Source of the DNA: Dimorphilus gyrociliatus
Lineage: Eukaryota; Animalia; Annelida
Direction: 5' to 3'
Assembly (NCBI GenBank): GCA_904063045.1
Contig: CAJFCJ010000007.1
Coordinates: 1,929,404-1,993,403, forward strand
DNA length: 64,000 bases
A model generated the notes under the pieces. It had not been told where the DNA came from. It ran no database searches and was given only the letters and a program-made list of their open reading frames with translations. Positions 48,340-52,266 of this stretch are shown one piece after another. Made by a program: the position numbers and the translations under genes. Positions within the stretch are counted from its first letter, which is position 1; every line of letters starts with the position of its first letter.

Positions 48340-48821
48340 TTTCTTTTTAAAATTTTTTTATAGCTATATTACACTATGCAAAATTTAGCGATTCTGCAAT
48401 CTTACAACTAAATCAAATTTCTATCAATCAATCAGTCTCAAACACAAGAGATTATAAGCTAATTTCCTGTGCCAATACTTTTTCTGTAAATGATAATAAA
48501 TGATTATTAAGAATGCAATCTTAAAGTTAATTCCGAAACATTACTTTAGATAAATTTTTTACAAAAAGTAATGTCTGAAAAGAATTCACTGTTTTTAAAA
48601 AGTTATAGCAATATAAAGAATCAGAACTTTATAAATGAGTATTTATTATTGAAAAAGGGAAATAAGTTTAATTCATTAATCTAGTAATTTAACAGCGAGG
48701 TATAAAATGCTTACAAATATTGGTGTATTTCTTTTAAATTAACAATAACTTACTTACCTGTCCAACTATATAATCCAACAATAAAAAAAATACTCAGTTT
48801 TAAAATTTTGTAACAGTTTTC

Positions 48822-50316
48822 TTAGGAGGCATTGAATGTAAACTTTATTTTATCTCGCTTTGCATTTTTTCTATTAAGAATTAATTCCTGTTCAGCTCTT
48901 TGTCTAGCTCTCATTTCTTCATCTCGACGCTGACGTTCTTCTAATTCTTTTCGCTCTCTTTCCTGCTGCTCAAGCATTTGTTCTCTCTGCAGAGAATCGA
49001 AGTTTAAATTTATCTCGTAAAATTAATTTTACTCTTTAACAATTATTATTTACCATTTCTCTTTGTTGTTTCTCAATTTTCCGCTGATTTTCTTCCATAA
49101 TACGTTGCAATTTTTCCGCTTCTAACCGTTTTTCCTCCTGTAGAAATAGGTAATAATTATGTTTCTTTAAACAGAACGTTAAAAAGAAATCCACGACTCC
49201 TACCCAAATTTCCCAAATACCCACCCGCCCACAAAAAATCATTCTAAACATACAAAATACGCTTACACTTACAAATTGGCAAAAGAAAAATAAAACCTTC
49301 TTTCACCTTCCTTCGTCAAATTGTCCGGTCCTAGAGCGCGAAGAGATCCGATGGCCATTTCTTTTACAATACATTTAACACGTACTAATTTCGCCTAAAT
49401 TTTAACCTTTTTTAAAAATTGAACGTGTATGTATTCTTGTTTTTAGCATTCATTTGCCAAAAATTATTTCACGTATTATTAACAAGATAGAAAATGACGT
49501 CCATGTAATGTGGCTGAATAACAATACCGCTGGAAATGCGCCACACTATATGGTTGTCTCATTACAAATAATTTACCTCAAAAATACTAAAAAGGATTTC
49601 CTGAAAACAAACAACTCAGTTTTAAGAAACTATGAATCTTCGCCAAACTTCTATCGATGGGTTTAAGACAGTGTGTTGACACTAAGGAAGAGAACTTTAC
49701 CTCGCGTCTTCTACTTTCTTGTAATTCCTTTTCGCGTTGCCTTTGAATTTCCTCCATCATCTCACGTTCCATAATTTTTTTTGCTTCTTCCACGCGTCGT
49801 AATATTTCTATTTCGATTTCATCTTTTCTTTTTTCTAATTCTTCTTTGACACGCTTGGCCACTATTAATTCTACCCTTCGAGCAACCTCCTCTTCAATCA
49901 ATTGCTCTTCTATCTTGGCTTGTACCCTATCATGATTAAATTAATAAAATGCAAAATAAAAAAAGAGACAATACTTTTGTCTTTGCTTCTCTGTATCTAC
50001 ACGCTTCATATATTCTTCCTTTTTTCTCACTTTTTCAATTTTTCTGTCAACCTCTGTCTCACTTTCTGTAGCACTTGAACTGGTAGTATATTTTCTCTTC
50101 CTAAATCAGATGATGAATTTAAAAATGTATAAATTAGTAAATCATTGTTATTTACCTCTTCTGTCTTATTCTCCTAATCATTCGCTCCCTAGAAAATGAT
50201 TTATGTCGCCTTCTACGATTTTCTCGTGATCTGCTTCTTGAACGAGATTTTCTTTTTTTGTGTTTTTTATTTTTTAGCCGATTTTCCTCGGGACTTTTAC
50301 TCCTGGATCTGACCAT
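48822..50316 (-). CDS. ARGLU1: Arginine and glutamate-rich protein 1, multi-exon
   Basis: RS-rich N-terminus MVRSRSKSP...RSRSRSRE, then [44 protein letters not shown] and C-terminal [17 protein letters not shown]. Confidence 0.95.
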
Positions 50317-50589: not shown

Positions 50590-52266
50590 ATGGCGACTTG
50601 TGACGTTCAACAGGCCATGAAGCTAAAATTAACAAGTAAACCGCAAGCCATTGAGGTTTTAGGAAAAATAGGTGATATTTTATTTATTATTTTTCTGACT
50701 TTTTATATCAAATAACTACCTTTTATAAATTGTTGCTATTCTCTTGAAAATAGCAAAATTTATATCCGGTTTCAATGATAACCAAATATCGCTCATGTAT
50801 ATATTTAGTTAAAAAAGACATCAATGAGAAAATTGAAGAGGAAGTAAAAAATAAAGAGCAAGCAATCTTGGAACTAGGAGAAATATTTGCTACAACTGGT
50901 CGAGCTGATGATTTAGCTGGATTAATCAAATTAACAAGACCTTTCCTACGATTAGTTAGTAAGGCTAAAGCTGCTAAGTTAGTGAGAACTTTAGTTGATA
51001 AGTTTTTGGATATGGATGCTGCAACTGGTAAAGAAGTATCTCTTTGTCAAGAATGCATAGAGTGGGCAAAGGAGGAAAAACGAACTTTTCTTCGGCAAGC
51101 TTTAGAGGTTGAGACTTTTCTTTTGACACTTGTCTTTTCTGTAATCTTGTATTATTCATAGGCTCGTCTGGTTGATCTATTCTATCGCTCAACTGAGTAT
51201 GAAAATGCGATAAATTTAAGTACTTCTCTTCTTAAAGAATTAAAAAAGTTGGATGACAAGGCTATGCTTGTTGAAGTGCAATTAGCTGAATCAAAAACCT
51301 ATCATGCTCTTAGTAACTTTGCAAAATCTCGAGCTGCTTTAACTTCTGCCAGGACAACCGCAAACGGTATTTACTGTCCGCCAAAACTGCAAGCCGATCT
51401 AGATGAACAATCTGGTATTGGATTTTATGAGCTGGAGTAAACAATCATAAATAATATTTTTTTTTTAAATTAGGTGTTTTACACGCAGCTGACGATAAAG
51501 ACTTTAAAACAGCCTTTTCATATTTTTACGAGGCCTTTGAAGGATATGATTCTATTGAGAGTCCTAGAGCAATCGTATCTCTAAAATATATGCTACTATC
51601 AAAGATTATGTTAAAGCAAGCTGAGGAAGTACAAGCAATGGTTAGTGGTAAACTTGGATTAAAGTATGAGGGACCTGAAATCGATGCAATGAAAAGTATT
51701 GCGGAAGCTGCTAAGAAACGTTCTCTAGCTGATTTTAAAAAGGTTGAAAATCCATTATTTCATGAAAACACATAATGAGGATTTTTCTATCTTTTGTTAA
51801 GACTGTAGATAAATATAAAAAACAATTAGAAGACGACAGGATCGTTCAACATCACTTATCTGCTCTCTATGACAAACTTTTAGAGCAAAATTTGTGCCGT
51901 CTAATCGAACCTTTCTCTCGTGTGCAAATTCAACACATATCAAGTTTAATTAAGCTTCCACAGGTTAACTTGAATTTAATGAAAGATTACTCTTTGATAA
52001 GATTAATTATATTTTCAGGACGTTGTTGAAAAGAAATTATCACAAATGATTCTGGACAAGACTTTTACAGGTAAACCAGGACATTTAAATTTATTATCAA
52101 TTATTCTGATAAACTGTTCACAGGAATCCTCGATCAAGGAGCTGGTGTGCTAATGGTATTTGATGAGAAACCAACCGATGATACTTATTGCAAATCCCTT
52201 GATACTATACAAAGCATGGGTAAAGTTGTTGATTCTTTGTATAATAAAGCGAAAAAGTTGTCATGA
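50590..52266 (+). CDS. PSMD11: 26S proteasome regulatory subunit RPN6, multi-exon
   Basis: [79 protein letters not shown] and [14 protein letters not shown]. Confidence 0.97.

Follow-up and report, generated by a model that had tools for sequence, protein, structure and literature searches.

A strongly conserved long intron in the ARGLU1 gene of the annelid Dimorphilus gyrociliatus and its candidate role in unproductive splicing

The ARGLU1 gene and its third intron

The window analyzed here is a stretch of 64,000 nt from the genome of Dimorphilus gyrociliatus, and all coordinates refer to it. Reading of its minus strand between 48300 and 50700, with translation per exon, yielded a gene with five coding exons that begins with the ATG at 50316-50314 and ends with the TAA at 48824-48822 (Table 1). 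Exon 3 alone matches the Pfam ARGLU family (PF15346) with 59.3 bits (cut-off 27) over profile positions 3-71, and the profile is continued by exon 4 (positions 72-98) and exon 5 (positions 101-149). The translation of exon 1 abounds in RS, KS and RR repeats, giving an Arg/Ser-rich N-terminus, and exons 3-5 are rich in E, R and K, giving the Glu/Arg/Lys-rich C-terminus of the ARGLU1 family. The gene is a member of this family, and the PF15346 match bears out the name that a preliminary description of the same DNA had given to it. It occurs once in the genome of 77.9 Mb and 349 contigs.

The four introns of the gene measure 55, 48, 563 and 67 nt, so that intron 3 (563 nt) stands apart from the rest (48-67 nt), with a length far beyond chance for this genome. 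The preliminary description had reported an intron of this length after the residues ...ESRRRE, exactly where we find it, in phase 0, and had put the other introns at about 50-60 nt, a fair approximation. Intron 3 occurs only once in the genome, and an origin from a repeat or transposon was therefore rejected. The D. gyrociliatus assembly of about 350 scaffolds has a median intron length of 66 bp, and intron retention in this species increases with intron size (PMC7854359); an intron of 563 nt is therefore intrinsically prone to retention. Short introns are probably ancestral among annelids (PMC7854359), and the suggestion in the preliminary description that introns shrank to an extreme degree in this lineage should be corrected accordingly.

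In the 3′ UTR, a consensus donor sequence (CAG/GTAAGTAAGT) stands upstream of an AATAAA at 48647. A scan for bacterial promoters and terminators, a method irrelevant for a eukaryote, returned nothing.

Table 1. Features of the ARGLU1 locus in the window. Slashes mark (putative) exon/intron junctions.
Feature	Coordinates	Strand	Basis or remark
ARGLU1 coding region, 5 exons	50316-50156, 50100-49975, 49926-49701, 49137-49054, 48986-48822	(-)	exon-wise translation
Intron 3, 563 nt, phase 0, GAG/GTAAAG ... TTTCTACAG/G	49138..49700	(-)	assigned as homologue of vertebrate ARGLU1 intron 2
Conserved non-coding element, 507 columns at 95.1%	49218..49721	(-)	longest window of >=95% identity to the relative
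Perfect identity run, 153 nt, spanning the 5′ splice site	49561..49713	(-)	longest in the aligned region 50700-48600
Candidate mini-exon A, 24 nt, in frame, stop-free	49577..49600	(-)	100% conserved in the relative
Stop codon TAG upon retention, 37 codons into intron 3	49587..49589	(-)	reading-frame translation
Predicted local hairpin, mid-element	49501..49553	(-)	z = -2.7, 0/200 shuffles fold as well
Candidate poison (decoy) exon B, 24-nt shortest form	49307..49330	(-)	acceptor, stop and three donors identical in the relative
In-frame TGA of exon B	49316..49318	(-)	precedes the exon 4/5 junction by 93 nt in the 24-nt form
Purine-rich (GAA/GGA) tract overlapping the first donor	49296..49314	(-)	sequence composition
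Competing donor-like cluster: AAG/GTGAAA 49306, TTT/GTAAGT 49272, AGT/GTAAGC 49266	49261..49306	(-)	100% conserved
Five G-triplets within 30 nt, 3′ of the donor cluster	49203..49232	(-)	conserved down to 49218
Consensus donor CAG/GTAAGTAAGT, 3′ UTR	48748..48760	(-)	conserved in the relative; 64 nt past the stop codon

Conservation of intron 3 against a relative

An open reading frame of a relative of D. gyrociliatus (P0004) was found in three Logan assemblies. Its exon-derived part differs from the D. gyrociliatus protein at 4 of 54 residues, and the residues that it reads from the intron are identical at all 37 positions. Two contigs of this relative (L002 and L003) are collinear with positions 53926-48633 of the window at 75% identity and carry the same neighbours, including a divergently transcribed RPN6/PSMD11-like gene. 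A global alignment to L002 gave 80-88% identity for the exons and 45-48% for introns 1, 2 and 4, a level at which these introns are unalignable. Intron 3, which measures 560 nt in L002, reaches 91.2% identity, with 516 matching, 41 mismatching and 9 gap columns.

Substitutions were counted per exon over whole codons, with split codons excluded. This gave pS = 0.69, a saturated dS of ~1.9 and dN = 0.036, with 27 of 53 fourfold sites identical between the two species. The strong divergence of the exons and the short introns identifies the two loci as old orthologues. The divergence of intron 3 (K = 0.077) lies ~25x below the dS of ~1.9, and the difference between intron 3 and the fourfold sites is highly significant (Fisher test, p = 1e-13). 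Judged from this pairwise comparison, intron 3 is under extreme purifying selection.

The conservation sets in with the last 13 nt of exon 3, continues over 140 mismatch-free nt past the 5′ splice site and falls to the neutral level in the final 55-80 nt before the intron's 3′ splice site. Among the eight longest stretches of perfect identity in the alignment, six lie in or across intron 3 (153, 72, 52, 46, 30 and 28 nt) and the remaining two (30 and 29 nt) outside it. The conserved element of 507 columns begins in the final codons of exon 3 and stops ~80 nt short of the end of the intron, and a window of 236 columns reaches 97% identity. Hence, at a dS of ~1.9 the element shows >=95% identity over >=200 nt and at least the conservation level of coding sequence, measured against one relative only, a scope that cannot single out the sub-element that matters. 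Two metagenome scans, one with the exon 3 protein and one with a 22-nt conserved word of the intron, returned no further relatives. The indels between the two introns are 1-2 nt long, and the conserved block is therefore not coding. Likewise, a nested protein gene was rejected, as the open reading frames on both strands are short and broken by these 1-2-nt indels.

Splice-like signals and the homologous intron of other animals

The preliminary description had placed an internal acceptor, an in-frame stop codon and a cluster of donors within intron 3, and all of its internal coordinates proved correct on the minus-strand reading. The acceptor ctcttcgcgctctag ends at 49331 (AG at 49332/49331) and is followed from 49330 by GAC CGG ACA ATT TGA, the start of candidate exon B. 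Depending on the donor, this exon would also have longer forms, to 49273 (58 nt) or to 49267 (64 nt). In the 24-nt form, the distance from the TGA to the last exon junction exceeds the 50-55 nt criterion for nonsense-mediated decay (NMD). The relative, at saturated synonymous divergence, has the AG, the TGA and each of the three donors unchanged. Conservation of the internal splice sites, one of the points on which the preliminary description had staked its proposal, was thereby found; exon B as a whole carries a single substitution, at 49319. Another acceptor candidate, with an exon start at 49243, is not conserved in the relative. The purine-rich tract at the first donor resembles an exonic splicing enhancer, and the stretch of G-triplets downstream resembles an intronic G-run enhancer, both judged from their composition. 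If intron 3 were retained, the reading frame would end at the TAG 49589-49587, the position that had been predicted.

A second exon-like segment, candidate mini-exon A, is preceded by the acceptor tgtttgttttcag ending at 49601 and followed by the donor GAG/GTAAAT at 49576, the 9-mer of which is identical to that of the intron 1 donor. These splice sites make up the best-looking internal pair of intron 3. The best-looking internal exon is thus one without a stop codon, an observation that counts against a poison exon.

The frequency of splice-like motifs in intron 3 was compared with 1000 dinucleotide shuffles. Donor-like sites showed no excess (6 versus 6.8 expected), acceptors a slight and non-significant one (5 versus 3.1), and exon-like pairs numbered 6 versus 2.1 expected (P = 0.08). 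The motifs are no more frequent than chance, and our argument therefore rests on the length, position and conservation of the intron instead.

A whole-library HMMER search with exon 3 as the query returned hundreds of open reading frames from many animals. In nearly every frame inspected the match ends at ...[K/R]E, with V, corresponding to GT, as the next residue. For example, vertebrate read-through frames have ...AQKARE/VTLGR, and the spliced vertebrate proteins have ...AQKAREEEER. The exon before the long intron ends at ARGLU profile position 71 in the D. gyrociliatus gene and in five others, namely those of the relative, two vertebrates (one of them a fish) and two invertebrate clades. 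The exon on the 3′ side of the long intron has 28 codons in the annelid, in an insect-like clade and in a third invertebrate clade. Since the preceding exon ends at position 71 and the following exon has 28 codons, intron 3 is, by its place in the aligned sequences, homologous in position to intron 2 of vertebrate ARGLU1 (profile 71/72, phase 0). An intron at this position was found in every other animal clade sampled. The preliminary description had named the junction of the human autoregulatory intron as equivalent, and the shared exon end in vertebrates and invertebrates supports this equivalence.

No significant blastn match was obtained between the annelid intron and the fish ARGLU1 intron (L014, 8364-10471, ~2.1 kb), nor did blastn detect similarity to the homologous introns of two other invertebrates. 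Within clades, conserved blocks appear in the same intron. Three species from another invertebrate clade (L008, L010 and L011) share one intron block that is conserved like the exons, at 73-82%, and carries two invariant donor-like motifs, CTG/GTAATT and GG/GTGAGA. In the insect-like pair L015 and L016 several conserved blocks lie within the homologous intron of ~930 nt. Upstream splicing followed by read-through into this intron is seen in two vertebrate products (P0188 and P0201) and in an annotated isoform X2 of a frog (P0177), which matches expectation because its retention in vertebrates is known.

The preliminary description had proposed that the feedback architecture survived in this lineage. 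By the present comparison, the annelid and the vertebrate intron have their position and, as far as the candidate signals go, their architecture in common, but not their sequence, since the annelid element cannot be aligned to the fish intron. The sequences do not establish homology of the element itself rather than convergence at an intron of conserved position.

A candidate unproductive-splicing switch

The closest known system is human ARGLU1, whose intron 2 is retained and contains an ultraconserved element and an NMD exon (Pirnie et al. 2017, PMC5389617). This alternative exon has a weak annotated donor (aca/GTaaat) with stronger competing donors downstream; it promotes retention, which is abolished by mutation of its acceptor, and its inclusion creates an NMD substrate (PMC5389617). 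Overexpression of ARGLU1 increases both the retained and the exon-included forms in human (PMC5389617). Moreover, the human ARGLU1 decoy exon was expressed as a cassette of 58-200 nt and acted as a transferable decoy (Parra et al. 2018, PMC6097662).

The annelid intron shares with vertebrate ARGLU1 intron 2 the gene family, the phase 0 position at profile 71/72, a conserved non-coding block of ~500 nt with ~95% identity between distant species, a frame that is truncated upon retention, and a following exon of 28 codons. It also has an internal acceptor followed by a stop codon and a cluster of alternative donors, which in the annelid are candidate signals. In these respects the annelid element resembles the human parts in miniature, with its acceptor, immediate stop, purine-rich tract, donors at 24, 58 and 64 nt and G-triplets. 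The two differ in that the annelid intron is only 563 nt long, with a block that takes up ~90% of its length and adjoins the 5′ splice site, whereas the fish intron has ~2.1 kb and no detectable sequence similarity. Retention, exon inclusion and feedback were proven in human cells (PMC5389617), and their annelid counterpart is a candidate. The decoy-exon model (PMC6097662) describes cryptic cassettes with competing splice sites inside retained introns of RNA-processing genes, which the candidate annelid cassette resembles. That one annelid form is 58 nt long, matching the lower end of the 58-200 nt human cassette, may be coincidence. Such decoys lie mostly in mammalian introns >1 kb, unlike the situation in the annelid, the spliceosome of which is tuned to introns of ~60 nt. 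As far as they are treated in the work on human ARGLU1 (PMC5389617), the ultraconserved poison exons of SR and hnRNP genes are similar in that a splicing regulator carries a non-coding element constrained above its own coding sequence and in that inclusion introduces a premature stop, for which the annelid exon is a candidate. They differ, within the same account, in that ARGLU1 is without an RNA-recognition motif and in that they were defined among vertebrates, whereas the annelid element was defined between two small marine invertebrates at saturated synonymous divergence.

We consider it probable that the intron 3 element is an unproductive-splicing switch through which ARGLU1 limits its own expression by means of a decoy or poison exon. 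The non-coding element of ~500 nt would act on the pre-mRNA and make the removal of intron 3 a regulated and partly unproductive step. The terminal splice sites would compete with internal ones, namely the acceptor at 49331 with the purine-rich tract and the donors at 49306, 49272 and 49266, and possibly with the second acceptor/donor pair at 49601/49576. Two dead ends may follow. Either intron 3 is retained and translation stops at 49589-49587, or the 24-, 58- or 64-nt exon with the TGA 49318-49316 is included, which would render the transcript a target of NMD. The factors UPF1, UPF2 and SMG1 were found in the genome, showing that the decay pathway exists. By homology with vertebrate ARGLU1, the protein may push splicing towards these dead ends and thereby exert negative feedback on its own level. 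The use of these splice sites, the detained or degraded products and the part of ARGLU1 as the regulator are inferred here. Within this explanation the exon 49330-49307/49273, rather than the 49600-49577 pair or both, carries the larger part of our confidence and is, taken by itself, a tentative choice.

The main surviving rival is that the conserved block is a cis-regulatory element at the DNA level, such as an intronic enhancer or a site of open chromatin serving ARGLU1 or a neighbour, with incidental splice-like motifs. Most vertebrate ultraconserved non-coding elements are enhancers, and the chance frequency of the splice-like motifs in intron 3 fits this possibility as well. In D. gyrociliatus, 944 ATAC peaks were reported in unusually long introns (Martin-Duran et al. 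2020, PMC7854359); intron 3 resembles these introns in being far above the 66-bp median, and differs in that its proposed role is in RNA, whereas such peaks mark open chromatin, a DNA-level feature. Against an enhancer speaks that the conservation is continuous over ~500 nt and not patchy, and that it is anchored at the exon/intron boundary, with the perfect 153-nt run extending over the 5′ splice site. Moreover, the gene encodes a splicing regulator, the same intron of its vertebrate orthologue holds an RNA-level element, and other clades conserve this intron around donor-like motifs on the sense strand. The splice-site-anchored, continuous conservation, the biology of the gene and these sense-strand motifs lead us to favour a role at the RNA level and to regard the enhancer as unlikely.

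Selection might alternatively act on an independent non-coding or structured RNA hosted by the intron, for instance a snoRNA-like, miRNA-like or long non-coding RNA. Long introns of host genes often carry small RNAs, and the local hairpin at 49501-49553 folds better than 200 of 200 shuffles (z = -2.7). The intron as a whole, in contrast, folds no better than its shuffles (z = -0.39), which led us to reject a global RNA structure. A known RNA family was rejected too, as no Rfam 15 family matched at E <= 0.1 and the sole match (E = 0.74, 19 bits against a threshold of 50 bits) is not beyond chance. In addition, 500 conserved nt far exceed the size of a small RNA, and the two sequences contain no compensatory changes or covariation in support of a structure, which makes a hosted RNA quite improbable. 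Hardly different, if anything slightly less probable, are alternative coding micro-exons that give rise to protein isoforms. The segment 49600-49577 would add the residues EILFSIFE, is in frame and stop-free, and has the strongest-looking acceptor in the gene besides a donor identical to that of intron 1. Yet the perfect 153 nt in and around it are without differences of the synonymous type, whereas the real exons differ at 69% of their synonymous sites; none of the orthologues inserts residues between profile positions 71 and 72, and a hydrophobic insert would presumably fit poorly into a charged helix. That the intron is merely longer and nothing in it functional, its apparent conservation resulting from contamination, recent transfer or an assembly artefact, has in its favour that a single relative was found and that its sequences come from Logan assemblies. 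Over 5.3 kb, however, the locus of this relative is collinear with that of D. gyrociliatus and has the same neighbours, and its exons and short introns have diverged strongly; its open reading frame appears in three independent runs, and the intron is single copy in the D. gyrociliatus genome, so that we give this explanation next to no weight.

Unproductive-splicing feedback in splicing regulators, and specifically in ARGLU1 intron 2, was known already. To our knowledge, descriptions of ultraconserved non-coding elements and of the ARGLU1 feedback intron exist only for vertebrates, and no report on the regulation of invertebrate ARGLU1 was found in the literature searched. New is an annelid member with the degree of conservation that is called 'ultraconserved' in vertebrates, with an unrelated sequence and within an intron of 563 nt. 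Vertebrate-grade conservation over ~500 nt in the homologous intron of an annelid whose genome has 78 Mb suggests an ancient circuit, and it suggests that selection can keep an intron long where the introns of the genome measure ~60 nt. Should the switch be real, it would provide an unusually compact natural model for decoy-exon and detained-intron control, because the whole switch fits into 563 nt flanked by tiny introns.

A more far-reaching reading, possible but in our view doubtful, is that the self-regulation of ARGLU1 via this intron is at least as old as the bilaterian ancestor. Its core would be a device rather than a sequence, namely a decoy exon whose weak donors, arranged in tandem, trap U1 snRNP beside a purine-rich tract, and each clade would have come to hold its own ultraconserved version of it, among them vertebrates, dinophilid annelids, the insect-like clade and the third invertebrate clade. 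Under the same reading, the consensus donor in the annelid 3′ UTR might serve as a further brake on this message that depends on U1.

Searches of the protein collections, with the read-through frame of exon 3 and with a profile headed by a 247-aa homologue, yielded no spliced or intron-retaining product of the species or of its relative; these queries recovered only the genomic frame P0004 of the latter. Of the sampled words, a marine metatranscriptome (X1) contained 0.39, with ~0.38 calculated for a fully spliced message, and the data set with the largest share (X19) contained 0.68, near the ~0.63 of a message that retains intron 3. Partial coverage of DNA would explain the X19 value equally well, and the two shares are weak hints that do not amount to evidence.

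Conserved blocks in the homologous ARGLU1 intron

The homologous ARGLU1 intron measures 1.7–2.1 kb in the three species that represent another invertebrate clade (L008, L010 and L011). Within it lies one block, and two donor-like motifs plus one TTAATTATTTTGTC in this block are invariant among the three species. In the insect-like pair (L015 and L016), the conserved intronic blocks reach about exon identity (71–73%).

A further invertebrate Logan contig, L006 (1831 nt), carries an open reading frame at 318–1061 in which the ARGLU1 N-terminus and domain are complete and uninterrupted, followed by 770 nt that read into the homologous intron. This contig represents either an intron-retaining ARGLU1 transcript or an ARGLU1 gene lacking the upstream introns.

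Conserved intronic blocks and the donor-like site of the 3′ UTR
Feature	Sequence	Coordinates	Strand	Location or conservation
Single intronic block	L008	5682–5822		Equal to exons
Single intronic block	L010	2605–2751		Equal to exons
Single intronic block	L011	2234–2315		Equal to exons
Several conserved blocks	L015	1508–2440		Within homologous ARGLU1 intron
Several conserved blocks	L016	783–1270		Within homologous ARGLU1 intron
Consensus donor CAG/GTAAGTAAGT	Window	48748–48760	Minus	ARGLU1 3′ UTR

A donor-like site in the ARGLU1 3′ UTR

A consensus donor is located 64 nt past the ARGLU1 stop codon and is enclosed by a 29-nt perfect match between the window and the relative with the syntenic orthologous locus. 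Downstream of this donor there is a conserved AATAAA at 48647, and candidate acceptors for a putative 3′ UTR intron occur near 48575 and 48484. The donor could mark such an intron or, alternatively, could be a U1 site affecting polyadenylation. If true, either function would add a second layer of control on ARGLU1.

The divergent neighbour and the first ARGLU1 intron

An RPN6/PSMD11-like gene on the plus strand (ATG at 50590, extending from about 50590 upward in the window) is transcribed divergently from ARGLU1, with only 273 nt separating the two start codons. The arrangement is kept in the relative, in which an RPN6_N open reading frame is found on the collinear Logan contig L002, and both genes presumably have a bidirectional promoter in common.

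On the same contig, ARGLU1 intron 1 (L002 3704–3759) apparently uses the GC donor AAG/GCATGA, the window counterpart of which is GAG/GTAAAT.

An ARGLU-like segment of ~65 residues was also observed in the middle of P0029, a library protein of 662 aa that is otherwise a much larger, unrelated protein; this segment may be a captured exon or reflect a mis-called gene.
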